Assembly: GCA_051530055.1 (NCBI GenBank)
Contig: CM121343.1
Location: forward strand, 1,892,389-1,956,388
DNA length: 64,000 bases
Source of the DNA: Neoechinorhynchus agilis
Lineage: Eukaryota; Animalia; Acanthocephala
Direction of reading: 5' to 3'
In this document: positions 10,367 to 53,740 of the stretch, piece after piece
Layout of the letters: every line of letters starts with the position of its first letter
Numbering within the stretch: the stretch's first letter is position 1
Translations under genes and position numbers: made by a program
Notes under the pieces: model-generated
What the model was told of the DNA's origin: nothing
Database searches by the model: none
What the model saw: the letters and a program-made list of their open reading frames with translations, nothing else

Positions 10367-12166
10367 TTAAACGATACTTTCTTCGAGCAAATAGGCTACT
10401 TCTTCATTATCATTATTGATCACCTTCGTTTGGATGTGATTAGCAGAAGACCACTTGTGAATCGTGTTAGCAATCAAATAGTTTTCAAATGAACTTAAAG
10501 AGACCGGAGCGGAGTTGGAGAATATCTTGACCATACTTCTTGCCTTCAACACATAATTAGAAGGTAGATAGTAACTTATTGAAACGTTGTGATCGCTAAC
10601 TTGCACCACTGACCATCCGGTCATGTCAACGTCTGCGGTGTATGAATTGTTTCTAATCGAAATGAAATTCTCGTTGGGGTCACATTCTTCAATGGCAATC
10701 GGGCCCGTGCTCCGCTTCTGTATCACTTTCCTCTTTGTCGTATATAGCTTTCCAGCGCCGCTCGACGACAATATGCCACCGTACAACTCGCTACCAGCAG
10801 CCGTGGCTGTGCCTGATGAATATGTAGAAGATCCACTGATTCCAGAAGCGTCAGCTATACCCGCTCCACCGACATTATAACGATAACTCTCCGATGAGCG
10901 TCCTACACCAACGCCCATCGATCCAGCGGCTGCACTATGAACTCCTGAAATTGAACCGGCATTAGATGTGAGGTGAAACTCTTCACTTTCCAATAGACGA
11001 CGGTAGGTGTTAATTTCGAAACGCAAGCTAACGTTGTTTTCAATAGTGGAACGGAGGGAATCTTGATATGATTGAATTTGAGCATTGAGTTGCATCAGTT
11101 CCATTTCCTTTTGGGCATCACGCCTTTCCTGTTCAGTTCGAATATCCATGATATCTTGCTCGATATTTCTTAAAGTATTCTGAAGAGAGTAGTTTTCATT
11201 TTCTAGACGCCCGCGTTCGTCTGTCATATCCTTAAGTGAGTCCTTAAGGCTACCTAAATCCATGACCTCAACCCTACCAAAAGCCTTTGCTTCTTCTATT
11301 TTTCTCTTTTCATCCGCTACTTGATCCTTCATTTCCTCCGTTCTGACCTTATAGTAAGCCTCAATTTCATTTTTCTGGACACTACTGAGAGTTTCGAAAT
11401 CCCGACGAATATCATTTATAGCTTTGGTGAGTTCACTTCTATAGAACTGTGAAACGTCGAATTGGGGAACAGCGAGATGCTGAAATTCCCTGATTTCCTC
11501 CTCATGGAGTGCCCGCTGGAACACAAGTTGATCTCCGAGGGTTTGGATCACATTCTGAAGAATGATTCGTTCATAAGTGCAACTGTCGAGTTCGTTTTTG
11601 AGATCGTTCAAGTTATTTAGATTGGTATCAAGGTCACCTTTATAGCGTCTCAGTTCAAGAAGAGTATCTCTATATCGATTTTCCAGTGCGTCCATTTCAG
11701 ATAGATACATTTCACGTTGTTGGGTAAGTGATCCAAGCTTTTGCCGGTCATCATTGATAAGGTTGTAAATGAAATCGATTTTGCCATTTAGCAGGTCTGC
11801 TTCGTATTCAAAGCTTTTCATGAATACTTCTGACCTGCACTTGACACGTTCTGCATCATCTATCTTTGCTCTAAGGTTTTGAAGCTCAGCGTCGTACTGA
11901 TCGCGGACTTTTCCGGTTTCGAATCCCCATTTTTTCTTAATATCATCTAGTTCCGCTTCCAGTTGTTTATTCTGGTTTTCAAGCTGACGGACTCTACTCA
12001 AGTATACACCGAATTTCTCGTTCAGATGTTGTAATTCACGCTTATCGTTTTCATGTTCCACGGCCATGCTTCTGATTGCGGAACTTCCTAGGACGGCACC
12101 GGCCTTGGTCTTTTCTCGGACGCCACTTTCAATAATAGTACGACGAATGATAGATGGACTGTCCAT
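10367..12166 (-). CDS. Cytoplasmic intermediate filament protein, protostome type, 599 aa, single exon
   Basis: Coil 1A LQHLNEKFGVYLSRVRQLE; rod end EINTYRRLLESEE; lamin-tail domain GPIAIEECDPNENFISIRN; no CaaX box. Confidence 0.93.
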   Translation of the reverse strand: MDSPSIIRRTIIESGVREKTKAGAVLGSSAIRSMAVEHENDKRELQHLNEKFGVYLSRVRQLENQNKQLEAELDDIKKKWGFETGKVRDQYDAELQNLRAKIDDAERVKCRSEVFMKSFEYEADLLNGKIDFIYNLINDDRQKLGSLTQQREMYLSEMDALENRYRDTLLELRRYKGDLDTNLNNLNDLKNELDSCTYERIILQNVIQTLGDQLVFQRALHEEEIREFQHLAVPQFDVSQFYRSELTKAINDIRRDFETLSSVQKNEIEAYYKVRTEEMKDQVADEKRKIEEAKAFGRVEVMDLGSLKDSLKDMTDERGRLENENYSLQNTLRNIEQDIMDIRTEQERRDAQKEMELMQLNAQIQSYQDSLRSTIENNVSLRFEINTYRRLLESEEFHLTSNAGSISGVHSAAAGSMGVGVGRSSESYRYNVGGAGIADASGISGSSTYSSGTATAAGSELYGGILSSSGAGKLYTTKRKVIQKRSTGPIAIEECDPNENFISIRNNSYTADVDMTGWSVVQVSDHNVSISYYLPSNYVLKARSMVKIFSNSAPVSLSSFENYLIANTIHKWSSANHIQTKVINNDNEEVAYLLEESIV

Positions 12167-14110: not shown

Positions 14111-14550
14111 AGAGTTTGTACATTCCGTAGTTGTGTCGAGGTAGTCTGGTGGACTAATGCCCTTGATCCCAGTTAAAGATCAACTGGTTCGAATCCGTTA
14201 CCGTGTCTAGTGGACTAATGCCCTTGATCCCAGTTAAAGATCAACTGGTTCGAATCCGTTACCGTGTCGAGGTGGTCTAGTGGACTAATGCCCTTGATCC
14301 CAGTTAAAGATCAACTGGTTCGAATCCGTTACCGCCAATGACGTACAACTAAAAAGGGGACGAAATACTGCTGAAGGAGGGAATCCCGCCTTCTGAAGGT
14401 ATTTGAGGATCCGGACGGGGATGTATAAACTCTTTACCGTATGGTTCAGGGTATTAAAGTGGTTTTATACGCTTCACTGAACCAGATCGGTGGACTGTGT
14501 GCCCAAGGAACAAAATTACCAGCCGTGAAAAAAATGCCGCACATAGATAC
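14111..14550 (+). mobile_element. tRNA-derived SINE-like element with triplicated head
   Basis: Heads at 14133-14202, 14203-14263 and 14264-14333 with A-box-like TGGTCTAGTGG and B box GGTTCGAATCC; homologous to 42151-42430. Confidence 0.8.
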
Positions 14551-17432: not shown

Positions 17433-18936
17433 TTATGTTTGCTTGTTTAACAGTTGAAGAATACTCTTTAATGTACGCAGCAGGAATCTTTCGATATGTC
17501 CTGGACGAGTCGCTGAGAAGACCATTCTTTGATTCAGATTGATGTTTTTTATTGAAGGAAATGGCGATAAAGGCAACTCAGCGGTGTTAGAGTACCGAAT
17601 CGTCTGTCGACATGTAATTTGATTTTCAAAAGCATAGAACAGTGGAAGGACGTATTTGAATCTTTTTATCGATCGAGCGCTGAACATTTCTGGACAATAG
17701 CAGAGGACGTGATAGTAAGTAAAAAGACGCGAGGATATGACAATCGCGAGTACTACGTCCACTGTATAATGGAAGTGTCCAAGTAAAATGCAGACTGCAC
17801 CAAGTCCGCATGCAGACCAGATAAGAAACGGAAATGCCAGCGTCCTTTTGGGAGCGTCTAAAGAAGAATATGAGACAAATAACGATGCAATTTAAGTTTA
17901 CACTCGGTCAAGAAGTGGGCAAGCACAACCAGCATGCAAGTATGTCCGCTAAATATATAATCTCCACACATCTGATTCCCGTTTATTTCCATTCCTTGAC
18001 TTAGCATAACATTTGCAGCCCGCTTGATTCGGTCTTTTATTGTCACCGGTTTCTAAACGTGTAAAATCATAACATTAAATTTTTTAGATTTCTAAACAAA
18101 CTCTCGAGCTACAGATCAGGTGCGGTCCAGTCATTGGCATGGATGTGACTATTACTGTTAAACCTCGAAACAAATATAGCAATGAGAGGATTATGAAGCA
18201 CCTCTGAACTATTAGACGGCTAAATAAGTATGTTTCTTAATATATAAATTTCATTTGCACACACTAACCGACACTTGTGAAATATGACCATTATGACAAA
18301 CATTCCAACAAACATGAGAATTGTTACTTCGGATGCTCTTGCAGCCCACGATATTCTGTTGAAATTGTCCATAAATACATCCGGTAACGGTTTGTAGATT
18401 TTCGGATTCGGAGTCCGCTCGTCGGCAATTGCCACTGAATACGAGGATGCCGCCCAACTTAGAATTAGAAGGACGACTGAAGCCATGAATTTTTTTAGCG
18501 CTGTTGATGATTCTTCATTTTCTGGCAATTTACTCAAATCTTCATTTCCTGAAAATGGCGAATAGAGTGGACATGTCAGGTCCTCCTGTACTTTCTTGTC
18601 CGACAATTTATCCATATTTACAAAATCACGATTGTTCGTACAATCATCGATTTTAATCGCAATAATCGTATGTTTCAATGAATCTGGTTGATTTTGGCTT
18701 TCGTCATTATTCGTTGAATTCGCAATCGAATTTTCTTGACTTCGTCGTTGGTATTCTGGAGGTGTTAATGTAACTTTGGAATATCCTTTTTCAGTTTCAA
18801 AAAATGAAAATGCTGTAGCTGAGAATGACCGCCTGTGTTCCGGTTCAACTCCGAATCGTTTTAATTTCAATCGCAAGTGATCGGTCGATGGTGTCGATGT
18901 GACATCTAATTTTTTTTCGTTAGCATTGCCGTGCAT
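17433..18936 (-). CDS. Sphingomyelin synthase family protein, 4 exons (18269-18936, 18102-18219, 17902-18052, 17433-17857), 453 aa
   Basis: Motifs PLPDVF, CGDYIFSGHT and HYTVDV; GT-AG introns of 49, 49 and 44 nt keep the frame; no SAM domain seen. Confidence 0.92.
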
Positions 18937-34584: not shown

Positions 34585-36085
34585 CATAACATAATAAAGT
34601 ACAAAACGTGCGATCACCACCGTCCGCAAAATCGAAGCTTCCCTCCTTCCTCGGCTGTCGCTATCACGCTAGCAGCATTGCATCGTTGTACTGCAAGCGA
34701 GATATTCTGTCGTAGGAATACACCTGCTCGTGCGTCGCCGGTCGTTTCTCTCAATTTCTTCGAGAGATCCAGGAGCAGAGTGAGTGCAGAGCTGCTAAGG
34801 GCTCCATACATATCTACTCCGAAGGGGACAAAATAGTGGGTCCTTGCTAATTCTCTATATTTTAGTACCTTCCTCGGTTCCGCTGCACTGGCTGCACCTC
34901 CAGAGGTTTCGAGAGAGTAGGGAATGTTGCCCACTGCGAGGGTGTCCACACGCGTGGCGTCCCAGTAAAGGCATATGCCTTCCCGCCACGGAAAGACCGA
35001 AATTCCGTCAGGTCGACGACCGTCTAGTCGACAAAGATGGGCGGGTTCCAAGATGTTGGGGAAGTTCGCCGTTCTCTCTCAGAATGGCGTGAGAACCTTC
35101 CTCCTGACTTTCGGCAAACGAGACCATGTCGCCCGAAAGCAACAACCAAAGACCCACATCGACAGCGATGGGGCGTGCATATCGGGAGACCAAGTCTTAA
35201 GGATACTGCGATCCTCGTTACCTCATCAGTAAGAAGAGTTCCCACTGATGTCAGAGGAACAGCCTCCAACCACACCCCCGATTCCCGTGTCCAAACTGCC
35301 AACAATCTAGCTCGGACGACCATATCGCGAGAACCTGAAAGTGGAGAACTGTGAGCTCTCTCGACGAGAAGTCTGTCCCAGATCGACTGTCTGAGGCCAT
35401 TCACGGGAACATGGTTAGCGCCTGTCTGCTGGCACCATTCTTCAACTGCAAACTTTTCCCTCCGAATTTTCTTCGCTATCGGTTGACTCCCCTCATACGA
35501 TCCAAGAAAGGCTGGCAAGGTCTACTAGCGCCTGAATGCCCAATCCCCCAGATGACACAGGCAATGAAGCTTGTCGCCACGCATTATCTGAGAGCTGGTG
35601 GACATTTAAAATAAGCTTGAGACAAGCTCTCACCTTGTCGTCGAGCTTAGCCAATCCTTCCTTATGTTTGAAGAATGATAACAATTTTGGGATAGAGAGT
35701 GCGTTCTTTATCGGAAATAACGCTTCGTGAGCCGAGAGAGCGCTCACCCTATCGCACAGCAACGAAAGTTTCGGTATAATACGACCGATCTCAGCTTCCA
35801 CATTTGAATCAAAGACGCAACTACCAAGGAGGCTGAGTTGCTCTGGAGTCACGAGTTTCAGACCTGGAGCTACTGCCTCGAACCCATCCATTAGCCCCTT
35901 GACTTTGGTGGCGTCTTCGATATTTAATACTAGGAGCTCACACTTTCCAGCATTAAGCTCAACGGCCAATATCACAGTCTCCCTAATCAGCGTCTCCAAA
36001 TCGCTCAGTACAACTGAGGGATCACCTCCGAGCGTGACGTCATCCAAGTACCAAGCGTTGAAGCTGGAATATTCTGTTTAAGCCA
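34585..36085 (-). mobile_element. 5'-truncated CRE-like non-LTR retrotransposon (RT, CCHC, RLE)
   Basis: WYLDDVTLGG, WRQASLPVSSGGLGI, CRCG...RH, DGRRPDG, FLRQNISLAVQRCNAASV; frameshifted. Confidence 0.88.
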
Positions 36086-37163: not shown

Positions 37164-39070
37164 TATCTAGTGATGATTGTTTGATAGACAATCCGACTGA
37201 AAGATAGATTTTATTCAAACACCAAGCTTTCGCCGTCCAACGGCTTCTTCAGGGTGTAATCTGCAATGCGAGTGGAGGTTCACAGGAGATTCATGACGGC
37301 AGACAACTCATCCTTCTGGTTAATGAGTGTCCTACCGACCGACCGGTGCCCGCTAGAGTAATCACGATCCCGGGTCTCTCGGGAGATGATCAGCGCTTCC
37401 GCTATCGACAGTTCGACGGGATCCTGCGCTTTGTACATTATGCGCGTGGACAGCCGAACTGTTCCACCCGGGTGGACTCGCGAATAATGTTTCGCCCACG
37501 GTGTCGTCACATACGATTGCGCACTTGGGTTCAACGAGTTTCGTACATGCTCGGTTACTCTTTGGCGAAGTGGCCTTTCTGTTTTGCCCACGTACGTGAC
37601 CAAGTGGCCACGGTCAATCCGACACCGTTCACATCGGATCTCGTAAACCACACTGCTCTGATCGCACATCTTCCAGTCACGATCAACTGCGTGCTGAAGC
37701 TCCTCCTCGTCCATCCTCGCACCTGCTGCGTATCTGCACATTAGGCACGACCGAGGGCATTCCTGATGATCCTCATGATGCCTCGTTCTCGTCAGCATCC
37801 TCCGCTGCGTTCTATACCCTCTGTGCACAATACGCACATTCAATCCTTCTTGCCCGAGCAGTACTTTGACTCTCTTCGTGAACATTTCACTAACGTACGG
37901 AATTCGTAGGATCGGCCTATCGTCCTTTCGTTCCCTCATGGGTCCAACGTCCCGTCTAATTCTATTTTCCACTTCTCGCTGTAACCCTTCGATCTCCTCT
38001 GTCGAATATCCGTTGTCCGCGAAGATCTTGTTTACTGCTTCCACCGCTCAAAGCTTCGCTTCCAACGACGATGGGCTGGTGGTTGCCGATTTATGCATAC
38101 CAGCGTATATCGCCGCTTTCATCGCCCAAGGATGGTGAGAATCTCGGTGCATCACAATCGACTTCCTGCATGGTTTTCGATACCAATTGAAGTTGGATAC
38201 ATCGTCGAATTTGAAGTGGAGATTGAGGAATGGCAGGTAGTCCGAAGGTTGGTCTCTCGTAACCCGAATCCTCCTATTCGCGTCCATTGAATTTAATAGT
38301 GACTCAATGGTATCGACCTCATTATCCTCGGTGAAGGTCAGCAACACATCGTCCACATAGCGGAGGTAAACTAAACTCGACGCTAAATGTGGATAGATGT
38401 GGTGTCTTTCCAGGTCATCGAGGTAGAGGATGGCCAATACCGGAGCTAAACTATTTCGCATTGCAAGACCACGAACTTGCTTATATAGCTGGTTTCGATA
38501 ACGAAAAAGGTTGCACTTCAGTACCAATCGTGTCAGACCAATAACATCGTCTAGAAGTAGACCGAAGAGGTCAAGATCCTCATTCTCCTTCAACCTTTTC
38601 TCCAGCGCACGTACTGCTCCCTCGTTGTCCACATTGGTGTACAATGCTACGAAATCAAAAGACATTACGCCACTGTTGGTCAATTCATTCTGTCGCGACC
38701 GCAGGGTTGATAGCAGCTCATCAGTATTGCTCACTAATGCCCGTGTCCTCCGTAGCAATGGACCGATAGCCGAAGCCAGGAAACGAGAAACACGGTATGC
38801 TGGTCCATTAACCGCAGATATGATTGGTCTGCATTTCAACAATGAGGCTGCTTGCGGTGTAATCGGACCAATATGCATCTTGTGTGTCTTGACCAATCCG
38901 TACATCACCGGCGTACGTAATGGACCGTGTGTGAAACTGCTCATCCCTTTCAACTCTCGAGCCGATATCACTTTTCGAAGAGCAGTATTCAACTCCTTGC
39001 GCTGTTGCTCACATTCGTCTTTTGTCGCCATTGTATATGTATCAATATGACCCAATAACGTCCCCATCAT
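37164..39070 (-). mobile_element. Penelope-like retroelement (RT plus GIY-YIG), 5'-truncated, one internal stop
   Basis: PVMYGLVKTHK, RPIIS, SFDFVALYTNV, RYVDD, then VVYEIRC...YVGKTERPLRQRVTEH; ORFs 38048-39133 and 37280-38044 are in one frame, separated by TGA. Confidence 0.93.
37219..37257 (-). ncRNA. Intact minimal type I hammerhead ribozyme (family C)
   Basis: ACACC-CTGAAGA-A-GCCG-ttgga-CGGC-GAAA-GC-TT-GGTGT; perfect helices I and II, palindromic AAGCTT stem III. Confidence 0.88.
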
Positions 39071-39249
39071 CGCACGATTTTTTAGAATTTTTATATATGG
39101 CTCAGCTGGTAGCTTTTGATACATTTTTTCCATACACGGCCAAATGGGGACACACAGTCCATTGATTTCGGTCTGGAAAGCGCTGGTCTGCGCTCAATGC
39201 CCCAAGACCGTACGGTTATAAGTTTGTACATCCTTCCGGATTCTGCGAT
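39070..39249 (-). mobile_element. 3' half of the tRNA-SINE family
   Basis: Reverse complement matches 42320-42430 and 42000-42112. Confidence 0.7.
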
Positions 39250-40408
39250 TGATAATCCTCAACCGCAACTTTCGGTGCTGTGCGAACGAATTAATGAATT
39301 ATCTTCACACGAGCCTCTGTTCCAGGTCAAGAAAATCCTCTTCATTCCATAATTGTTGTATAAGCTGCGCACAGCACCTTTTCGGACATAAGGATAAGCT
39401 GGCAAAGTTAGACCAGACGGTGTCGGACGAGGCGTGGCGTCAAGCGTCCTTGCCTGTGTCGTCCGCCTTTTTGGGTATCCGAAAAGCAGCCGATATTTCT
39501 TCCCATTGCAAGACCACGAACTTGCTTATATAGCTGGTTTCGATAACGAAAAAGGTTGCACTTCAGTACCAATCGTGTCAGACCAATAACATCGTCTGGA
39601 AGTAGACCGAAGAGGTCAAGATCCTCATTCTCCTTCAACCTTTTCTCCAGCGCACGTACTGCTCCCTCGTTGTCCACACTGGTGTACAATGCTACGAAAT
39701 CAAAAGACATTACGCGACTGTTGGTCAATTCATTCTGTCGCGATCGCAGGGTTGATAGCAGCTCATCAGTATTGCTCACAAATGCCCGTGTCCTCCGTGC
39801 GAGTAGGTACCCGTCAATGGTTGCAAACAATCAGTTTGGGACTCACCCCTGGTAGCGAGAATCCATAACTCTCTTATTTAAGATTCTCGTGACCTGGTGA
39901 ACCGAGCTTGATTGGGGGCAGTCTCTACAAGAGAATCGGGTGCTTGGCTCAACGCTATCCCGAGCGCTTCTGTAAGTATTCTTCTCTCCGACGAGTCCGT
40001 AAAGAATGCAGATTAGGAGTACCGACATCCCATCGCAGCCGCTAAGGAGCGACACTGGAACCATTAGGACGCCATGGTCTCGTTTGTCGGCAATCAGGCG
40101 GAATTGCTCACGGCACGTCGAAGTGAACTCATTTCTTAGTCGTGCCCTGAATACTATGAATGCGCCCAACATCCTTAAAATTTGCCGACTTGATGGCCGT
40201 AGACCGGACGGTGTCAGTATTCCCGTGGCGAGAAGGAAAATGTTTTCTTTGGGACGTCAGGTTCATGGACACGATCGCAGCAAGCAACATAAAATTCGCC
40301 ACTATTAAGCCAGGGGGAGCAGCAACTGCCGCTGAGAAACTCAAAAAAATTAAATACAGGGGCCTGAATCGAAATCATTATTTCGTCCCCTTTGGCGAAA
40401 TTACCACA
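39250..40408 (+). mobile_element. CRE-like fragments (39250-39500, 39799-40408) interrupted by a PLE RT piece
   Basis: DEAWRQASLPVSS; ESGAWLNAIP; CRLDGRRPDG; WDVRFMDTIAAS. Confidence 0.8.
39503..39797 (-). mobile_element. Second copy of the PLE RT core
   Basis: About 97% identical to 38461-38755; retains GLAMG where the main copy has GLAMR. Confidence 0.88.
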
Positions 40409-40439
40409 CTTAGCATATATTTTTATTGATGATTTAAGG

Positions 40440-40670
40440 ATGGAAAACTTGGGAAGGACGACCATCGTCGATTATTTGCCTCCTTCACATACAAAAAGTA
40501 CTTGCAGGTATGCGATTCTCGTCTTTGAACAAAGAGATAAAGCAATTCCATGGAATTTAAAATTCAAAGCACTTTGCACAAAATATAACCGATTACGGTA
40601 TAAAAAACTCACATGGTATTACAACTTTGTCCCACTCTACACACTGGAGTTCAATGTAACAGCCGATTGA
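40440..40670 (+). pseudogene. Orphan 3' exon of a PEBP/RKIP-family gene
   Basis: VDYLPPSHTKSTCRYAILVFEQ resembles PEBP YxxPxPPxGTGxHRYxFLxYEQ; TTTAAG acceptor upstream; 5' part replaced by CRE DNA. Confidence 0.6.
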
Positions 40671-40790
40671 TTTGAAGTTCCCATTGTTAAGGTAACGAAT
40701 ACTCAAGGGTTTTAAAAATAAACACTCTTCCACACACAATTCTGAAGTTTGACCAATTAAGTTTATTAAAAGCTTGAACATAACCATTAA

Positions 40791-41183
40791 TTACGGTCCT
40801 GTAAAGTTCCTTTGGTTGCCTCCATACATGCCTCCGAAAAAATACGGCACCACGGGAAGCCTTCCACGGCGGAATAGGTATAGCCTAAATTTAAAATTAG
40901 ATCGTATTTTAGAACAGAAGAATAAATACGTCATAACGAAGGCCAGCGGAATTGTCAATATGCCCACAATCGAAATTACAATACAAAAAATATATAACCA
41001 GGTATCATCCATCTTCTAAGTGATATAAAGTTCGTAAGTCTAGAGTAGTTGGTAAAGATTTTTAGGTCTTACCTCGAAATGAATTGCGTTCGTCAAACCG
41101 TGAAAGTTCGTCCCGTAATACAGAAAGACGAAAGCAACTAAAAATAAAATCCGTCTTGGTCTTAAAAAAAGCCTGTACAGCAT
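40791..41183 (-). CDS. 111-aa membrane microprotein, copy A (exons 41073-41183 and 40791-41015)
   Basis: ATG, 37 codons (signal/TM1), 57-nt GTAAGA...TTAG intron, in-frame exon with TM2 and basic tail. Confidence 0.65.
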
Positions 41184-41999
41184 AAAAATTGTGCCGTCCT
41201 TGTAGTTTCGAAATTACAGCCACAATATTAACAAACTATGATGTTCAAAATTATCCCATTTTACTGTTTTAGAATTGCGTGCTCTATTCTGATCACCCAC
41301 TTTAATTTTAAAACTATTATTTTCCAAATAAAAAATGCTTAGAAAGGCTATGAATATGCAATGAAAATAAATCATGACAATGTGAATTAAACCAAATTGC
41401 AGCTTTGTCGAGACATTGAAGTATTAATTTCAAGCTTGTAAACACTTCAGATCGCATTTAACCTTAGATTAAATCGATGGCTGTCATTTATGTCATCTTT
41501 AAGATAATAATCGTTTCAAGTTTTTTACAATTCATAACATTTATTGTGATTTATTGTAATACTGACATGCTAATTTCTCGAGTTCGCCAAGGAACGTCTA
41601 GAAAAACAAGACCACCTTATTGAAGTGTGATATAATTTGTAACTAGTCGTTTTAGACCTCATTGCCAGGGAGAGCTTAATAAAGAATGGATAATCGGTAT
41701 TTTATAATTGAAGCATGATCAAAAATTACGAAAAATAAAACACTTGAAAATTAATTTTACTTTGACCAATTTGAAAATCGTCCCGTGATTATTAAGTAAC
41801 TTCGGCATTACCATTAACGTGAACTCCTATACGATCTTCGACTTCGTTTCATCAAATTCTTGTATTCAACCCATAACCACGATTAGTTCAGTAGCCTTGA
41901 GTGCGGAATAGTTCTTATAAACTTCATTCGGCAATATCTGTCGAAAATTTGGGACAATAACAACACGTTTTATTATAATAACATTTTTTAGAATTTTTT

Positions 42000-42112
42000 T
42001 TATTTTTTTATGTGGATCACCCAGTAGTCTTTGGATATATATTTTTTTCATATACACGGCCGAATGGACAGTCAATCTCCCAATTTTTGTCTGGGAAGCG
42101 CTGGTCTACGCT
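42000..42112 (-). repeat. Inverted copy of the SINE tail upstream of the SINE
   Basis: Reverse complement gagcgtagaccagcgcttcccagac matches 42371-42430. Confidence 0.7.
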
Positions 42113-42150
42113 CTGAAGAATCGGAAAGCTTTTCCATGCTAAAGTAGCAA

Positions 42151-42430
42151 AGTTTGTACATTCCGCTATGTGCTGAGGTGACCAAGTGGACTAATACTCC
42201 AAGTCCCAGTTAAGGATCAACGGGTTCGAATCCACGACCACCGATGACGCACATCAAAGGGGATGAAATACTGCTGAAGGGAGAAAACTCACTGATGAGT
42301 CCCGCCTCCTGGAGGTATCCGAGAATCTGGAGGGATGTACAAACTTATAACCGTACGGTCTTGGGGCATTGAGCGCAGACCAGCTCTTCCCAGACCAAAA
42401 ATCGGGGAATGGCTTTCCATTCGGCCATTA
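42151..42430 (+). mobile_element. tRNA-derived SINE-like element with hammerhead core
   Basis: B box GGTTCGAATCC; GGGAT-GAAA...CTGATGA-GTCCC; enclosing inverted repeat 42151-42164 and 42332-42345. Confidence 0.8.
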
Positions 42431-42509
42431 TAATAACATGTTTATTTTTAATAACAGGATATTTCTTTAATCATAGATGTCACGAAATCTTTCACGCCAC
42501 CGCTATGGA

Positions 42510-42935
42510 TCACTCAGCTGCCGTCCTGGTGTAAAAATCGAAAGGGCGGATGCAGCGTTCCTTCCCCGGTCACAGGGGCAGACTAATGTTTTGTAGGAGG
42601 AATGCTTCTACCCTCTGATCGCCAGTGATTCGTCTCAATCTCTAAGGCAATTGCTTGACCAGTTCCTGCGCCGCGGTACCAAACGACCCGAGTGTCTCGA
42701 CGCCAAAGGGAACAAAATAATGATTTCGACTCAGGTCGCAGTATTTAATCCTTTTGCGGTCCTCAACGGCGGTTGTTGCTCCTCTGGTTTAATGGTGGCG
42801 AATTTAATGTTGCTGGCTGCGGACCCTTCTTGCCACGGGAATACTGTGAAACAGTTCGGTCTACGGCCATCGAATCGGCAAGGATTGCTCGGCTCTAAGA
42901 TGTTGAGCGCATTCACAGTATTCAGGGCATCAATA
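42510..42935 (-). mobile_element. CRE-like 3' fragment
   Basis: NILEPSNPCRFDGRRPN...FPWQEG. Confidence 0.8.
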
Positions 42936-43398
42936 TGGTTTTACGGTCGCTCCGCAACGGCAGCGATGGGATGTGCAGTTCAATAACCATGTTTTGTATT
43001 CAGAAACAATACCCACTCCGAATGCAATAGTGATCACCATTAGAAGACATTCACCAATAGACGAGACGGTGAAAGCATCGGCGATAAATGATTTTGAACC
43101 CCTTTGACCCTGAAAAAAAGGATGTCATTTACGACGTTTAATCGTACAAAGCTAGATTTAAACGATCTTATTTATTGATTGTTTGTACCGTTGCTGCAGT
43201 CATTAAGCAAAGCTGATTTTATTTCCAGTGCTAAAGAGAGCAATTGCTTATAAGTAAACTTGAATTGGATTTAATTACAAAAAAAACAGAACTAATTAAG
43301 CTTAAATACGTTGGCTCTACGGATTGATCACCATGGCAACTAAATATCTAATATGTTCAAAATTTAGTAGTGGGACGTTCATCAACTTCGTCTTCAGA

Positions 43399-43740
43399 AT
43401 GGAAACACCGTGCCACGACTACCCACTCCAAGGCATGTACGTCGTCAATTTGGAAGTTCAACACGGTTCAACGATGTTGCCGTTGTACTTGCAAAGAGAT
43501 AGACCTATCAGAGTATCGGATCTCCAAGAGAAAATCGCGAAGGTTTCATGCATTCCTATGTGCATGCAGCGAATTTACTTTGAAGGACAGTACCTCCATC
43601 GATGGCCTAACGCACGGCTCTTGGACTTTGGCGCCGTGAATGGAGTTCGTTTAACTCTTGCCGGCACCACCTGCACAAGACACGATCCCAAGTGCACTGA
43701 GTGTCTCGTTTGTAAGGATGCCAACGTTTGTTATCACTGA
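43399..43740 (+). CDS. Ubiquitin-like domain protein (BAG1-type UBL) with Cys-rich tail, about 113 aa
   Basis: VSDLQEKIAKVSCIPMCMQRIYFEGQYL...LLDFGAVNGVRLTL fits the UBL pattern; the start may be preceded by an exon. Confidence 0.65.
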   Translation: METPCHDYPLQGMYVVNLEVQHGSTMLPLYLQRDRPIRVSDLQEKIAKVSCIPMCMQRIYFEGQYLHRWPNARLLDFGAVNGVRLTLAGTTCTRHDPKCTECLVCKDANVCYH

Positions 43741-44231
43741 GGGCGACAGAGTTAAAATTATTTACTGAATAAAAATAAGCTTTTTGAATGAGTACAATGC
43801 TTTTGGAAAAATAGGGATGGATTGCAAGCTTTGCGGCCAACTATTGAGTTTCGTGGTCAGACTGCCAGTAATATCAATGGCGGAAAACACTAATCTGGGG
43901 AACACAAAGAGACGCATCCACGCAGTCTGTCAATATAGAGGTGAATCTCTTTGCGGCCTGATATCACGCGCCCCTTGGGATTATTTTAAGAACGTCTCTA
44001 GGCAAAACTCGTACAATATTCCCTTCAAATGGAATTTAATTTTGTACTGGTGATAGGATTTTTAGGCCTCCAATCAATGGACTTTGGGGATGAACCGGAA
44101 CCGCTGCAGCGTGAATCACGGGGTCATGAACCCTTAGAACTCTTGTTTGCATCAGGGAGAAAATTTCATCACAAACCTCACAGATTCGGATGAGATTACT
44201 AAGCGCTGCTTGGTTGTTCAGCCGCATGTTT

Positions 44232-45159
44232 TATCTAGTGATGATTGTTTGATAGACAATCCGACTGAAAGATAGATTTTATTCAAACACCAAGCTTTTG
44301 CCGTCCAACGGCTTCTTCAGGGTGTAATCTGCAATGCGAGTGGAGGTTCACAGGAGATTCATGACGGCAGACAACTCATCCTTCTGGTTAATGAGTGTCC
44401 TACCGACCGACCGGTGCCCGCTAGAGTAATCACGATCCCGGGTCTCTCGGGAGATGATCAGCGCTTCCGCTATCGACAGTTCGACGGGATCCTGCGCTTT
44501 GTACATTATGCGCGTGGACAGCCGAACTGTTCCACCCGGGTGGACTCGCGAATAATGTTTCGCCCACGGTGTCGTCACATACGATTGCGCACTTGGGTTC
44601 AACGAGTTTCGTACATGCTCGGTTACTCTTTGGCGAAGTGGCCTTTCTGTTTTGCCCACGTACGTGACCAAGTGGCCACGGTCAATCCGACACCGTTCAC
44701 ATCGGATCTCGTAAACCACACTGCTCTGATCGCACATCTTCCAGTCACGATCAACTGCGTGCTGAAGCTCCTCCTCGTCCATCCTCGCACCTGCTGCGTA
44801 TCTGCACATTAGGCACGACCGAGGGCATTCCTGATGATCCTCATGATGCCTCGTTCTCGTCAGCATCCTCCGCTGCGTTCTATACCCTCTGTGCACAATA
44901 CGCACATTCAATCCTTCTTGCCCGAGCAGTACTTTGACTCTCTTCGTGAACATTTCACTCACGTACGGAATTCGTAGGATCGGCCTATCGTCCTTTCGTT
45001 CCCTCATGGGTCCAACGTCCCGTCTAATTCTATTTTCCACTTCTCGCTGTAACCCTTCGATCTCCTCTGTCGAATATCCGTTGTCCGCGAAGATCTTGTT
45101 TACTGCTTCCACCGCTCCACGCTTCGCTTCCAACGACGATGAGCAGGTGGTTGCCGATT
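44232..45159 (-). mobile_element. 5'-truncated PLE copy (GIY-YIG plus 3' end)
   Basis: About 99% identical to 37164-38091 and shares the exact 3' end. Confidence 0.93.
44287..44325 (-). ncRNA. Family C hammerhead, G12A mutant
   Basis: Identical to 37219-37257 except GAAA to AAAA at 44299. Confidence 0.8.
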
Positions 45160-46819
45160 ATTTTAACTTCGTCGAAGATATTCAAATCAAAGCAACGCTT
45201 TTATAAATATAAGCTACGCACTTAGATTCGATTGAGTCTTGAAAATTCTAAATCCGATCACTCGTTTAAAAAATCTACTCATTCTTGTATGTTTTGATGC
45301 TCAGATTATTTTTAAATGTAAAATTCGTTGGGTCTGCGAGAAATCCGCGACCTCACATATCGACAATCCAATTTAATTTTACATATTTATTAGGGGATTT
45401 ATTAGATGCAAGTAAACAATATTTACAAATAATAATTAAAAATTTAGACGATTCAATTACAATTTTTGTTGAAAACTGTAAGTTATGAATTTTTTTGTTC
45501 AAATATTTTTTTGGGTTGATTTCAAACTCAACTTTTTAGTCGCGTCTTTCTACAAATGAAGGTGGACGGGCGCTGTTCAATGCTAAAACGTGCATAAAAT
45601 ACCCAGTGAATATTCCTTCACTGGATTCTCTGATATTCATTAAAATATCACAGAAACGACCATCGATGAGTTCAAGCTAAAAGAAATTGGAATTTTCATC
45701 AAGATTTAAAAAACTGAGATTTACCGTTATGACAGTTGGACGTACGCCTTCTATGCAAGGACGAATAATGTGCTTTCGAACGATAAGATGAGAATATCTT
45801 GTAACTCGAATTTCCTTACAAATAATATTTTTAGACTTGTTGACGCATTCTTGGATTATTTCCGTATTTAAATATGTGTCCGATGGAGAATACATCTAAC
45901 GAAAAGAAAGCGATCGGTTCTATAAGCAAAATTTGAAGGAGCAAGAAAATGAATACTTTTCTATACGTTTATCTGAACACTTTTTTCTCCAGAAGATATA
46001 GACCCTTTTTCGCATGAATGTACTTTATTCGTATTGCTCTTTTTTTAGCTTCTAGCCAATGAGATTCGTTTCAAGGGTCGGTGATGGAGGCACGTGATTT
46101 CATTCGCAAATTTATGTTCGTCTTCACGACGTGGTCACTTTTTGTTTCTAAAAACTTTGGATTTGAATTGAGCAAACACTTTATTCTTACAACTTTTAAA
46201 TCTCATAAATTGGTCATTTTAAAGACTGAGAACTTTTAGTGGAGCTTGAAATACTTAAGAAATTTGATTTATGCATTTATTTAAGAAAGACTACTTTAAT
46301 TGTTTTTGTATTTAAAAAGCAGGAAAACTACAATTAATAAATAATTTCATTTTTGAATCGGTCTATTTCTCGTATTTTCATCCGTGAAACATTAGTCATC
46401 GCGGTAATGTGAGACTCTAAATCGAGAAATTAGCATGTCAGTATTACAATAAATCACAATAAATGTTATGAATTGTAAAAAACTTGAAACGATTATTATC
46501 TTAAAGATGACATAAATGACAGCCATCGATTTAATCTAAGGTTATATGCGATCTGAAGTGTTTACAAGCTTGAAATTAATACTTCAATGTCTCGACAAAG
46601 CTGCAATTCGGTTTAATTCACATTGTCATGATTTATTTTCATTGCATATTCATAGCCTTTCTAAGCATTTTTTATTTGGAAAATAATAGTTTTAAAATTA
46701 AAGTGGGTGATCAGAATAGAGCACGCAATTCTAAAACATTAAAATGGGATAATTTTGAACATCATAGTTTGTTAATATTGTGGCTGTAATTTCGAAACTA
46801 CAAGGACGGCACAATTTTC

Positions 46820-47212
46820 ATGCTGTACAGGCTTTTTTTAAGACCAAGACGGATTTTATTTTTAGTTGCTTTCGTCTTTCTGTATTACGGGACGAACTTT
46901 CACGGTTTGACGAACGCAATTCATTTCGAGGTAAGACCTAAAAATCTTTACCAACTACTCTAGACTTACGAACTTTATATCACTTAGAAGATGGATAATA
47001 CCTGGTTATATATTTTTTTTATTGTATCTTCGATTATGGGCGTATTGACAATTCTGCTGGCCGTCGCTACGACGTATTTATTCTTCTGTTCTAAAATACG
47101 ATCTAATTTTAAATTTAGGCAATATCTATTCCGCCGTGGAATACTTCCCGTGGTGCCGTATTTTTTCAGAGGCATGTATGGAGGCAACCAAAGGAACTTT
47201 ACAGGACCGTAA
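46820..47212 (+). CDS. 111-aa membrane microprotein, copy B (exons 46820-46930 and 46988-47212)
   Basis: Same structure as copy A, with intact frame and splice sites. Confidence 0.65.
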
Positions 47213-47332
47213 TTAATGGTTATGTTCAAGCTTTTAATAAACTTAATTGGTCAAACTTCAGAATTGTGTGTGGAAGAGTGTTTATTTTCAAAACCCTTGA
47301 GTATTCGTTACCTTAACAATGGGAACTTCAAA

Positions 47333-47560
47333 TCAATCGGCTGTTACATTGAACTCCAGTGTGTAGAGTGGGACAAAGTTGTAATACCATGTGAGTTTTT
47401 TATACCGTAATCGGTTATATTTTGTGCAAAGTGCTTTGAATTTTAAATTCCATGGAATTGCTTTATCTCTTTGTTCAAAGACGAGAATCGCATACCTGCA
47501 AGTACTTTTTGTATGTGAAGGAGGTAAATAATCGACGATGGTCGTCCTTCCCAAGTTTTC
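47333..47560 (-). pseudogene. Second PEBP exon copy, lacking the acceptor
   Basis: Same peptide as 40443-40670 with one synonymous change. Confidence 0.55.
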
Positions 47561-47685
47561 GTGCAGCGGGGCAATGCGGCTAGCATTTTGGCCAGCGCCG
47601 ATGAATAGGAGCGTCGAAGAAACTATAAATTATGTATGCGTGCTTTTGGTTAAATAAAAGTAGAACGTCTTTAAAATAGTGTGGT

Positions 47686-48167
47686 AATTTCGCCAAAGGG
47701 GACGAAATAATGATTTCGATTCAGGCCCATGTATTTAATTTTTGGCACGAACACCTGATTTGGTGTGTGCCAAAGCGCCATCTGACAAGTTTGCCCTATT
47801 GCCAGAGGCATGGGCCTTCGCGGAAACGGAACGCGGAAAGCGAATCAGGCTGACCCTTCTGTTCTTGATGAACGACTGTGGTCGTCAGGAGAAGAAGGAA
47901 TTGGCGTTTGAAGTCTTGGCGGACAATCCTGGTGTAGCCTGCACCTACAGCGATTACCCTCATCAGCTTGGAGGTTTACACAATGTTCAGCTAGCGGATG
48001 GAGTGGCTCCGCAAGCTGAAACGCATGGTTGTCTTCTTTGAAGAGTGTGCCAATGTTTATCGGAGGCGCACGGCCAGAACATTACTCCCCGGCGCATGCA
48101 AAGGCAGTGCAGGTTCTCTGTCATGCGAGTTTGCAACCATTGACGGGTACCTACTCGCTGCCTGAAT
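47686..48167 (-). mobile_element. Rearranged CRE-like fragments
   Basis: 47686-47742 matches 40345-40408, and 48138-48167 matches 39799-39828. Confidence 0.6.
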
Positions 48168-48539: not shown

Positions 48540-49960
48540 CTTGAATGTGTTTGTTTATTTTTGAAGTGAGACGGTTCTGGTCGGGTGGGTTTGTTGGTAG
48601 TTATTGTTTATAGGAGAATTTGTGAGTCATTTCAAGTTAAGATATCCGAGAAGATTGGGTAGTTTGGCAGAAGGAGCGGAGGTATAGGGAGGTCCGAGGT
48701 ATTGGAGAATGAAAGGAATTGGGATTGAAAATGGGTTTAAAGGCGTTGTGATTGTTTGTTGAAAATCTTATAAGGGCATTCGGTGAGAGGAGGAAAATAA
48801 ATTGTGCAAATTTTAGAGGCGTTTCTATGAAACTTTTCAAGGCGACGGATTTGTGATTTGGAAAGGATGCAAAAGACGGGATAGCCGTTGGTGGGGAAGG
48901 CTAAAATAGAGCTGTAGTAAAATTTGGAGAGATCGGCCGAAGGGACTCCTAAATGGCGGAAGATTAAGAGGCTGTAAATTTGCGTTTGAGGGTGAATTAA
49001 ATATGGGAGTCCCATTTCAGATTGTGTTGATATTGGCGACACAGAATCGTTGGATGTCGTTTGGAAAATCGGGATAGGATGTGAGGTTGCGGAAGAGAGA
49101 GGGATCATTTCGAGGCATGTGAAGAAATTCAGATGGAGTTTGTGATTGTTGCAGAAATCTTTTATGTCTGAGATTTCGTTAGATGTTAAGGAGAGGGAGA
49201 GAGATTGGATAGTGATTGAGGGATGGGGGGTGATATTGTCGGCATAAAAGAAAAGTTTAAAGTGATGCGAGAGAGGTTTAAGTTCGCTTAAGAAAATATT
49301 AAAAAGAAGTGGTGACAAGACAACACCTTGGGGTACGCCTTTGGCGAGGGGTTGGTTGATCGAGAAGGTGCCCATGTAGTTAATGTATTGTTGGCCACTG
49401 CGAAGATAATATGCCAGTCAGTGGATCTGTGACGCGTTTAGACCAAAATCGGAACAGGCCTTGAGTAGTAAAAGGGCCATAGAGCCGAATGCTTTCGATA
49501 AGTCCAATCGAATGAAGCGGGTGACGTGAGATGGATGATTGTCGAGGTTGCGTAGGAGCATGTCGTAAATGTAAAGTAGGGCAATCGTTGCTGAGCGTGA
49601 GTTTTTGTTAAGAAATGGAAAAGGGCGTGTTTTGAATCATTTTTCGGCAATTTTAGAAAAAGCGGGCAAAATTAATATTGGACGGAATGATTCGGTGGAA
49701 ATCGGATGTCCATTTTTCGGAAGAAGGATCACTTTAGCAGTTTTCAGACATGAAAGGTAGATTCCATATAAAAAGCTGCGATTTATAATAATGGTAAGAG
49801 GATCTATAAGTTCGGGGATGATGCAGCGAAGAACCCAGTTTGGGATTTCGGATTGAGGGGATGAATTTCTTGAGATGGAGGTTGACTTCACATGACGGAA
49901 CATCCAGGGCTTCGTGAAGTACGTCGGACCATTTCAACATCCGCAAATTCTTGTCCATCA
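48540..49960 (-). mobile_element. Decayed LINE RT (CR1/L2-like)
   Basis: RPILILPAFSKIAEK, KGVPQGVVLSPLLFNIF, YADN. Confidence 0.82.
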
Positions 49961-50029: not shown

Positions 50030-53000
50030 CGTGTGACTGAGGGTCGTCAGGTCACATGTCAACTAACGTTCAGGCGTTAGCGGAGGGTGGCATTCGGCCA
50101 CCCAATACACTGAAGATACCGTATCTTCTGCAACAAGAGAGTTATTGCTCTCTGAACTAAACAATCCAACCAGCTCGTCCGAGGAACTCGTCTTCTTGGA
50201 GGCACCTTCGAAGAAAAAATCCAACGTTATATCTTTAAAAGCTAATCCCGTTCTATCACGAGAAGAACTATTTAAACGATTCCTGTCCCCGTGGCTCAAA
50301 ACGCTCAATGATGACATCATAAGAATCACCTCTACTACATATTTCGCCGGCCAATTAAAAATATACTTTAATGACAGTCTTCATCTCAGCAACCTTCACA
50401 AATTCATCGAAATGAATTGCGACACGTCTGGCGTCCAAATTACAAACGCAAGCTACTATTCAACCTTCCTAGTGAATCGATTGTCTCCCGACATCGATGC
50501 TGCAGACAAAAAATCGTTCGAGAACAAGTTTGGTTGTGAGATTCTATTCTTCCTCAAATCGGCCCGTACAGCCAAGCTTATTCCTAGGGCGGTAGTAAAA
50601 GCTCCGGTTGATCGGAGAGATGCGCTAATAAGTGAGAGATACTGCTTTCAGGGAATGGAAATCAATTTTTCCATCAACGAGATATCGAGACTGGACGACT
50701 TCACGTTCCCACGTTGCAGCATCTGCCAATCCTGGGGACATTGGTCACAAAGATGCCCTACAAAAAAGTCCGTTTGCGCATTTTGCGCGTGCAACCACCA
50801 TTCATCAGCTTGTCCGAAGGATACAAAATGTTGCGCCAACTGTAAGAAGACAGGACATTGCGCCTTTTCGAAATCCCGTCCGGTTTTCAAGCAATATCTC
50901 AATTGGGCTCAAACGAAACCGTCCGCAAACAACAATGCTAACATCGTACGTCAGGCACCAAACAAGCAAGTAGTCCATGAATCTGCCCCTCCGCCATCGA
51001 ACGAATGGCGCTCTGAGCGAGTGTCACCCAACCAAGATTCTATCAATGGAAAACTTCGCCAATTTTCGGATAGGATCATGCAGATGGTAGATCTCCGGAT
51101 AAATATGGCTATACAAGGACTCGAGAAAAGATTGGCCTCTCATCTGGACGCACTAATGGCGACTATATCCGCACGACTGGACAACATGTTTCCTCATGGA
51201 TCTATCGACAGCCCGATTTCCTGCAAACGTATCCGTAAAGCGTCTCCCGTCAATCCGAACTTGCCCAACTCAGACGTTGAGATGTCCGAGAACGAACTCT
51301 TCGTTCGGGATATTATCCAAGAACAATCTCAGGTTTGTGTCGCGGGAGATCACAAACCTATTCAAAAGTGCGCAGCACGGAGTTAAGGATCGTGCAGTGG
51401 AACTCTGGTGGACGGCTAAGTATCCATAGACTGCTCTCAGAGGCCTTGAGGTGCAGCACCATCTTTATTCAGGAGTCCAAGTCTGTCTATAATGTTCATG
51501 ACCTACCTCAATGTCTCAGCTCACTGACCGAACAATTTGTCATATTTTGTACCCCTCCTCATTCGCCGAATTCCCAAGGTCTACTGTCTTTTTTCCGGCC
51601 TTCTCTCGGTCCCACACAGATCACATCGTATTCCTCCGATGATCTGTCTTATTCAATTTTTTCAGTTTGTTTTAATGGCTCTAGACTTTTATTAGCAAAT
51701 ATCTATGTCCGGCCTCATAAGATACATCTCCCTTGTAATAAGACCATACTAAAGAACATCTTAGGGTCCGGTATTGACTATTGTTTTGGCGATTTCAATG
51801 ATCCTTCGCATAAATGGATCAATTCTATTAATCGTTCTGGAGAGTCCCACAACATTATTATGCCCGATTATCCTACTTTTGCTGACGGATCTTCATCCTC
51901 TTACTTGGATCTATGCATATACCGCAAAACTGGTTTTTACAAACCTATTTTAATTTCTCAATCTTCTCCCTTTCGGGTCGCTGGACACGACTTGGTAGTT
52001 TGGGAGCTCGACAAGAACGTTCTTTTATCGCGAAAGTTCAAATTGGGATGGTTGAATGTCAGTCTCTTCAATGCTGTTACCCGCTTTTTTTGTCTGGTTC
52101 AAAATCCACCGAGCTTAACGATATCAACAATTTTCTGGCTGACACTAGTGACAGTTTCCTTACCACCGTCAGGGGATCCGTAGGAATACCTCGGAAACCC
52201 AATCTATTATCCCTTTACGGTAAGGAGCTCTTTAAAGCTAAGGCAGCGGGCGACACCAGTTCCTCTAAGTTTTGGTCATCTCTCTACTGGCCGTGCAAAG
52301 CCAGATTCCAGATAGCCCAAGATCGCGAAATGATCAGCTCTTACCTACCCCACTCAGTAGTAAACCGGAAGCGCTCCTTCCCATGGAAAAGGGCAGCTGC
52401 CGCCTGGATCAGAGCTTTAGGCTTTGACACAGTCATCAGTGCACTTCGCTCCAAACACTCCAACGGTGCCAGTCCGATTCCCATCGCCACTAACTTCACA
52501 CTTCCTAAACCACGGAGACTTGATCTCACCAAAAAAGATTTTTTACAATGGTGGACGTCTAAGAATCTTACCTCATGCAACGGCTCTTCAGCTTGTTTCA
52601 AAGCAACCAACGTCTTGAGTAGGGATAACATTTCATTATTGGCCAGTGTCATGCTATTAGCCTCACCTGAAGAATGGTCCGAAATTAATATTGCGAAAAG
52701 GATTTTCCTACGCAAAGGTAAGGTTCGATCAATATCTTCTCCGGGAGATGTGAGACCAATTTTCATTCAAAACTCGTTGGTCTCCATCTATGAGAGAATA
52801 TTGGCAAAGCGGATCGTCGCGTTCTCCTGTGAGCATAATATCATCGATAAGCGATGCAATGGCTTCGTTCCCGGCAAATCAGTCCACTCTGCTATGAACG
52901 AAATTATACTTAATTTTGGCCAGAACCGTCGTGTTATGAATATCTTGATTTCTTTTGATATCAGCAAGGCATTCGACAATATCGATATTGATTTTATCCT

Positions 53001-53740
53001 GAGTATTTTGCGGTTTTTTAATTTTCCTTTCAATTTCATAGCTACGGTTCACAATACCTTGAAGTCCAAACGGTTCTTTTTCTCGGACGACCCCGCTCGC
53101 TCAGTTTACTTTCAGGTTAAAGGAGTTCCCCAAGGCTCCCCTCTATCACCGATTCTTTTCTGTTTGGCCTCCCAATATATTGTTCAAAACTGCAAAGTCT
53201 GTCATTCTATCACCATGTACGCGGATGATCTCACCGTGGTAATAAAAGAACGCAACTATGTGCAAGCTCGAGCGAAGCTTGCTGCAGTTCTGAATTTCTT
53301 AAAAGAAAAACTACCTCACATGGGTCTTGCCTTAAATAATAAAAAGACCAAGTTTTTAATAAAATCAAAATCCGTCGTTGAGAGACTTTGTCAAGAAGTT
53401 TTTCGCCCTTGATTTTTTCCCGGTATATCAAAGACTCAACATTCTAGGTTATACCCTTACCAGTAATCTTTCAGTCTCGGCTGACATAAGATGAAACGCC
53501 TCTTCAAATGTGCCAATGCTAACGTGCTGCCCGACTAGGCCTCAATCCAAGGACTTGCAGATCTATTTGAAACTCATGGGCCATATCTGGTCTAGTCTTC
53601 TATTTTAGAGGACGACCGCCCGAACAACGCCAGAGCTTTCTCCACTCTCCCTTTCGCATGGGCCAACACCGTCGACTGGACTGCCAAAGTGGATAAATGG
53701 ACAGCGATCGCCAATGAATGATACGTTCGATTTATTCAAA
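50030..53740 (+). mobile_element. Near full-length LINE: ORF1 with three zinc knuckles, APE, RT; several frameshifts
   Basis: CSICQSWGHWSQRC, CAFCACNHHSSAC, CANCKKTGH; WNSGG, GDFND; FDISKAFD, GVPQGSPLSP, YADD. Confidence 0.92.

Follow-up and report, generated by a model that had tools for sequence, protein, structure and literature searches.

Does a short stretch of sharply raised divergence inside two otherwise nearly identical DNA copies record selection on a gene, or recombination between repeats? This question is raised by a locus of the acanthocephalan Neoechinorhynchus agilis (GenBank assembly GCA_051530055.1, contig CM121343.1, positions 1,892,389 to 1,956,388 of the forward strand; this whole 64,000-nt stretch is referred to as the window, and all positions are counted from its first letter). 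Here, a small open reading frame (ORF) that can be spliced to an upstream exon to give 111 codons is present in two inverted copies, A and B. A first-pass annotation made from the sequence alone had read it as a membrane microprotein under diversifying selection or as a target of gene conversion from further paralogs. The differences between the copies are concentrated in a 172-bp patch, and the explanation that we favor, with a probability of about 0.47, is that this patch is a recombination mosaic; the inverted duplication that carries it is young and adjoins a Penelope-like retroelement.

Results

The differences between the two copies are clustered in a 172-bp patch

Copies A and B lie on the arms of an inverted duplication, separated by a spacer of 4834 nt, and the arms differ at 22 of 1142 aligned positions (98.07% identity). 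The 111-codon gene model of the first-pass annotation, with its 57-nt intron, was exactly reproducible in both copies, and the reading frame is intact in each (Table 1). Fifteen of the 22 differences fall within 172 bp (8.7% divergence), while 7 are found in the other 970 bp (0.72%), a 12-fold contrast in line with the roughly 10-fold excess that had been estimated by eye. When the 22 differences were placed at random, 1 of 200,000 placements reached 15 in any 172-bp span (permutation scan, p ~ 5e-6), and Fisher's test for the clustering gave p = 1.7e-8. Outside exon 2 we counted 7 differences in 917 bp (0.76%) where about 6 had been reported; the earlier statement that exon 1 has none was correct, the intron has none either, and one difference lies at position -1 of the first ATG.

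Thirteen codons of the ORF differ, two of them by two changes each, giving 12 amino acid changes and one synonymous codon (Y83). Nine of the amino acid changes lie in codons 3 to 27 counted from the internal Met, and eight are within the predicted hydrophobic helix. Our recount thus agrees with the earlier figures of 15 differences, 12 amino acid changes, and one or two synonymous changes, and with the placement of nine changes in codons 3 to 27 and eight in the second transmembrane segment.

At the nucleotide level, the changes of the patch form two sub-clusters, one of 10 within 74 bp and one of 5 within 48 bp; 10 of the 15 are transitions and 5 are transversions, and both directions occur. 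This mixed spectrum is like that of ordinary diverged DNA, which we count in favor of a mosaic. Adenine mutagenesis of the kind seen with diversity-generating retroelements was rejected, since each copy has a mixture of bases at the 15 sites and no adenine specificity; an editing-like process was rejected as well, since the substitutions are not strand-coordinated. CpG transitions make up four of the 15 changes, as had been noted. The accompanying advice to discount them did not hold, as the observed/expected ratio of CpG is 1.1 to 1.2 here. Window-wide it is 1.07 to 1.22, in genes, repeats, and intergenic DNA alike, which suggests that CpG-methylation-driven mutation is absent in this genome.

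The changes in exon 2 look like unselected mutation

For exon 2, the Nei-Gojobori method (NG86) gave S = 49.8 synonymous and N = 172.2 non-synonymous sites, with Sd = 1.5 and Nd = 13.5 differences and dN/dS = 2.7. This ratio is not significantly above 1 (Fisher's test of N versus S, p = 0.26). In simulations in which 10 transitions and 5 transversions were placed randomly in the patch, 62 to 64% of all runs were stop-free, and a helix-grade hydrophobic stretch survived in 99%. Among the stop-free cases, at most one synonymous codon was seen in 8% (p = 0.08) and at least 12 amino acid changes in 18 to 23%. The kept frame, the kept hydrophobicity, and the mostly non-synonymous changes are therefore all expected of unselected mutation here and, because random mutation reproduces them, they carry little weight as arguments when an ORF is short and the DNA AT-rich. 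The earlier observation that frame and hydrophobicity are kept is true of both copies; its use as a sign of selection fails, as random mutation keeps the frame in 63% and the hydrophobicity in 99% of cases.

Purifying selection on the patch (omega of 0.2 or less) is rejected. At omega = 0.2, finding at least 13 of 15 changes to be non-synonymous has p = 3.6e-4, and at omega = 0.5, p is 0.01 to 0.05. Since purifying selection is excluded, either the patch is free of constraint or positive selection has acted on it; it is not a conserved gene that has merely diverged. The silent sites do not discriminate between these two. At about 3%, against 0.76% in the flanks, synonymous divergence in exon 2 looks raised, though on only 1.5 changes; 0.3 to 0.4 synonymous changes are expected at the flank rate and about 3.4 at the patch rate, and 1 to 2 were observed.

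The ORF lacks independent coding support

No homologue of the ORF was found in a word-index search of 5.8 billion proteins, in an exhaustive HMMER search against 1.84 billion representatives, or in a locus scan of metagenomes of the Joint Genome Institute (JGI). Since the word-index search was empty, this ORF is also missing from the gene set of the source itself. Pfam searches with the ORF, with the ORF antisense to it, and with the other small ORFs of the duplicated unit gave only sub-threshold matches, on the ORF itself (TMEM128, E = 0.0046; GPCR_Srz, E = 0.052). The codon-usage log-odds of the ORF, -0.05 to -0.08, lie under the median for 175 random ORFs about as long, while real local genes mostly reach +0.10 to +0.21. 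Of random 172-bp spans, 20 to 45% have at least one frame free of stops, and the two translations of the antisense ORF over the patch also show 12 amino acid differences between the copies. We rejected a structured RNA because Rfam gave no match with either the gathering score or an E of 1 as the cut-off and because consensus folding placed a compensatory double change in 0 of 63 predicted pairs. The chance that the ORF is a real gene is, in our judgment, roughly one in three.

With the selection tests non-significant and coding support lacking, the case for selection rests wholly on the contrast with the flanks. This contrast is the only strong signal at the locus, and it is equally a hallmark of a gene-conversion mosaic, which explains it as well as selection does. 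Selection on a membrane microprotein is possible, while the changes look like random mutation. The diversifying selection claimed at first is not demonstrated, given a dN/dS compatible with 1, zero homologues in the collections searched, and a codon usage that is not gene-like.

The arms share a junction with a Penelope-like retroelement

Beyond the arms, the copies have in common a further 66-nt segment, which a three-way alignment with the copy at 42701 resolves into a 13-nt junction and a retroelement's 5' start, ATG included. On the A side, this start continues into a Penelope-like element, whereas on the B side it is cut at 47743. Because both arms share a junction made by transposon insertion, their common origin, or their last homogenization, is later than the insertion. 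Between arm and junction, 32 nt in A are replaced by 117 nt in B that resemble the 3' coding end of an ORF at 34632-34691 like those of retrotransposons without long terminal repeats (non-LTR; 70%, E = 0.002); judging from this similarity, the B segment is probably a severely 5'-truncated retrotransposon insertion. The 32 versus 117 nt, partly derived from a transposable element (TE), constitute a second structural difference between the arms, and more than point mutation has therefore occurred.

In both copies, the duplicated unit lies directly upstream of the element's 5' start, like the upstream pseudo-LTRs of Penelope-like elements. The unit, however, has no match elsewhere in the window, including 37164-38100, and a third, more diverged element start is without it. 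Since it is unmatched by the 3' region of the element and absent before the third start, we regard the unit as flanking DNA and not as a pseudo-LTR. The idea that the arms are the terminal inverted repeats of a DNA transposon was also rejected: there is no target-site duplication, the A boundary runs into the retroelement, and only B is truncated. Several other young repeats nearby are about 0.65% diverged, and the setting is TE-dense. A homology search with the reverse transcriptase (RT) ORF returned only distant nematode and Logan relatives (34 to 40% identity), and exact look-ups of two TE ORFs gave no called gene, so the TE copies of the assembly are absent from the protein collection. As separate observations, the Penelope-like element has an internal duplication (38455-38753 and 39500-39798, 98%), and the third element start is preceded by an inverted RT piece (42322-42400 versus 39166-39244).

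Setting of the locus

The part of the window from 34 to 56 kb is mostly retrotransposon debris. One non-LTR retrotransposon in it has a zinc-knuckle ORF1, and frameshifts interrupt its RT ORF; on the opposite strand lies an RT fragment from a related element. A 138-codon ORF between the arms weakly resembles the ubiquitin family, with an E of 0.0034 that does not reach the Pfam cut-off. A 70-bp tandem unit, present at two sites and carrying the tRNA-like T-arm motif GGTTCGAATCC, has related copies immediately upstream of arm A; ARAGORN called zero tRNA genes on the tRNA-like array, and the unit may be a tRNA-derived repeat resembling short interspersed nuclear elements.

Elsewhere in the window, we found a single-exon gene for a cytoplasmic intermediate-filament protein with a lamin-tail domain (599 aa, CaaX end absent). 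With 42% identity to a bdelloid rotifer protein and 37% to an acanthocephalan one, its best named relatives are so distant that the host lineage must be poorly sampled; they place it, probably, near Syndermata. The PAP2_C-domain gene (453 aa) served as a local yardstick for splicing; its three very short introns (49, 49, and 44 nt) have the donors GTTAGT, GTTTGT, and GTAAAC and acceptors that are all TTTAG. The end of the window is occupied by a twitchin/titin-like gene with Ig and FN3 domains.

Table 1. Coordinates of the inverted duplication, the candidate gene model, and neighboring features in the window.
Feature	Positions	Strand	Remarks
Arm A, inverted duplication	40443-41584	-	1142 nt, gapless versus arm B
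Arm B, inverted duplication	46419-47560	+	1142 nt, gapless versus arm A
Divergent patch, copy A	40835-41006	-	15 of 22 differences, 8.7% divergence
Divergent patch, copy B	46997-47168	+	172 bp
Candidate exon 1, copy A	41073-41183	-	37 codons, signal-peptide-like, identical to copy B
Candidate intron, copy A	41016-41072	-	57 nt, GTAAGA...CTTAG
Candidate exon 2, copy A	40791-41015	-	74 codons and stop; hydrophobic helix, basic tail
Candidate exon 1, copy B	46820-46930	+	
Candidate intron, copy B	46931-46987	+	57 nt; acceptor AG is part of the in-frame TAG bounding the exon-2 ORF
Candidate exon 2, copy B	46988-47212	+	
Antisense ORF over patch	46984-47229	-	81 codons, open in both copies
AATAAA	47236-47241	+	24 nt past stop; copy A equivalent 40762-40767; one of three AATAAA in the arm
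Further shared segment, copy A	40345-40410	-	66 nt, 98% to 47678-47743
Further shared segment, copy B	47678-47743	+	retroelement homology ends at 47743
Segment private to copy B	47561-47677	+	117 nt; copy A has 32 unrelated nt at 40411-40442
Penelope-like retroelement	37164-40397	-	RT and GIY-YIG nuclease (inserted Cys motif); directly downstream of copy A, same orientation
Penelope-like element fragment between arms	44232-45159	-	928 nt, 99.35% identical to 37164-38091
Third retroelement 5' start	42701-42974	+	75-88% similar, more diverged; duplicated unit not before it
ORF between arms	43324-43740	+	138 codons
RT fragment, related non-LTR element	48737-49375	-	
Non-LTR retrotransposon	50145-53412	+	
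70-bp tandem unit	14144-14334 and 42141-42280		
Tandem array	6775-7929		293-bp unit x 3.9, 97% matches
Intermediate-filament gene	10367-12166	-	
PAP2_C-domain gene	17433-18936	-	
Twitchin/titin-like Ig/FN3 gene	56.7-64 kb		

Discussion

We hypothesize that the patch is a recombination mosaic. The two copies are the arms of a young inverted segmental duplication in an intergenic region dense in retrotransposons. The duplication covers about 1.3 kb, its copies have diverged by about 0.7%, and 4.8 kb of spacer lie between them. One arm could have received a short tract, by gene conversion or patch repair, from a third and more diverged copy at another place in the genome; alternatively, an older stretch may have escaped a homogenization that wiped out the differences on either side. 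In a stretch this diverged, the mismatches would themselves impede further conversion. The small ORF over the patch, open on both strands, would be unconstrained, and its non-synonymous look would be that of unselected mutation in any frame. That interlocus conversion can leave duplicates patchily diverged is well documented (PMC3924837, PMC3924818). Conversion from paralogues, with a putative event and a putative donor, fits all of the observations made on the sequence. We favor this neutral mosaic because the ORF has no independent coding support, the ratio of non-synonymous to synonymous changes is neutral-like, the changes fall in a membrane helix, and the surroundings are recombining transposon debris.

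A number of observations speak against the neutral mosaic. A third copy of the unit, which could have been the donor, was not found within the window by tblastn or sensitive blastn. The patch lies wholly within the 225-nt exon 2, for which a random tract in the 1142-nt arm has a chance of about 5.5%, and third codon positions account for only 2 of the 15 changes (binomial p ~ 0.08). The predicted peptide has a gene-like coherence, with a signal-like N terminus, a short linker, a helix, and a basic tail. Its Kyte-Doolittle 19-residue maximum (2.65 to 2.82) is in the top 2% of random ORFs, and the helix is followed by the basic SKIRSNFKFR, which together give the stretch of at least 19 residues plus basic residues by which single-pass membrane proteins are predicted. 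An in-frame upstream exon with an ATG could be joined in 14 of 276 comparable ORFs, both copies included, when a 40 to 70 nt GT..AG intron and an ATG-started exon of at least 30 codons were demanded; among these 14, a GTRAG donor is found in the two copies only. The 57-nt candidate intron fits the 44 to 55 nt of local real introns, and an AATAAA lies 24 nt after the stop. Moreover, a divergence peak inside converted duplicates is also a published signature of selection against conversion (PMC3924837). The chief rival reading is a real, lineage-specific gene pair whose product, by prediction, is a small membrane protein with a signal-like N terminus, one transmembrane helix, and a basic Gly/Tyr/Phe-rich tail, and whose patch was kept or driven apart by selection, either through rapid diversification after a recent duplication or as a divergence peak protected from ongoing arm-to-arm conversion. 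Such a pair agrees with the 13.5 non-synonymous versus 1.5 synonymous differences, a dN about 11 times the flank divergence, the exclusion of purifying selection (p < 4e-4), and an AlphaFold model with two helices (residues 9-37 and 42-86), and it resembles the divergence peaks of the red/green opsins (PMC3924837) and of the Tigriopus GOT1 paralogues (PMC3728101). Against it stand the dN/dS that is not significantly above 1, the missing homologues and the absence from the source's gene set, the codon usage, and the equally open antisense frame. The gene model itself has caveats: the strand is T-rich, which favors hydrophobic codons and readily yields hydrophobic ORFs, the acceptor is no more than the in-frame TAG bounding the ORF, the seven real donors seen nearby are of the GTT, GTC, and GTAAAC types and not GTRAG, and the AlphaFold model is of low confidence (pLDDT 62). 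In addition, the surroundings are transposon debris, and 8 of the 12 changes affect the membrane helix rather than an exposed part; such a helix is seldom a target of diversifying selection. We regard selection on such a gene pair as a serious rival, though less likely than the mosaic, and the more specific claim of a taxon-restricted 111-aa membrane microprotein pair whose transmembrane helix is driven or held apart against conversion by selection as somewhat less likely again.

The changes might instead stem from a single local mutational burst, in which one arm suffered a double-strand break or a collapsed fork and its error-prone repair brought in many substitutions at once. Their restriction to 172 bp in two sub-clusters and the absence of a donor copy from the window favor such an event, and inverted repeats are fragile sites, so that the duplication itself possibly provoked it. 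A density of 9 to 13%, however, far exceeds that of known repair-associated clusters, and the spectrum is mixed, neither strand-coordinated nor adenine-specific; we consider a burst improbable. An assembly or haplotype artefact, in which an arm or the patch is a mis-joined or mis-polished mix of alleles or of an unassembled further copy, seems somewhat less probable than that. The region is full of young repeats and is represented by one assembly only, but the window has neither Ns nor gaps, the arms have different unique flanks with a TE-derived insert private to B, and cross-mapping during polishing would homogenize the copies, not diverge them. We attach the least weight to the proposal that the arms are transcribed as a long hairpin RNA feeding small-RNA production, with the ORF irrelevant and the patch a tolerated bulge: although 1.1-kb arms that are 98% complementary around a 4.8-kb loop in a TE-rich region would suit this role, Rfam is empty, compensatory changes are zero, and the clustering of the differences is left unexplained.

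The recombination mosaic that we prefer, and the selection that it competes with, both have counterparts among known systems. In the primate sex chromosomes, large palindromes undergo arm-to-arm gene conversion; as at this locus, inverted arms that are about 99% identical surround a spacer, and homogenization is expected. Those palindromes measure tens of kb to Mb, whereas the arms here are 1.1 to 1.3 kb long and lie in transposon debris. Snake venom PLA2 and conotoxin genes have accelerated mature-peptide exons with conserved introns and untranslated regions, and share with our copies an exon that is more diverged than its non-coding surroundings through mostly non-synonymous changes. They differ in having many members, secreted cysteine-rich products, and a robust dN/dS > 1, compared with two copies, a membrane helix, and a non-significant dN/dS in the present case. 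Patchy divergence that interlocus gene conversion leaves between duplicates includes the peak-of-divergence signature (Teshima and Innan 2008, reviewed in PMC3924837), which is found in exon 5 of the red/green opsins and in the GOT1 paralogues of the copepod Tigriopus (PMC3728101). There, as here, near-identical flanks, including non-coding ones, enclose a short, sharply diverged exon segment in linked paralogues; in contrast, the opsin and GOT1 genes are known to be functional, orthologues date their duplication, and functional residues lie under the peak, while this locus offers an orphan ORF seen in sequence alone.

If the selective reading were true, the locus would be a clean and very young case of an orphan membrane microprotein diversifying in its membrane helix, for example through pairing with different membrane partners or in an intramembrane arms race, in a poorly studied lineage, and it would provide a compact test case for the peak-of-divergence method.

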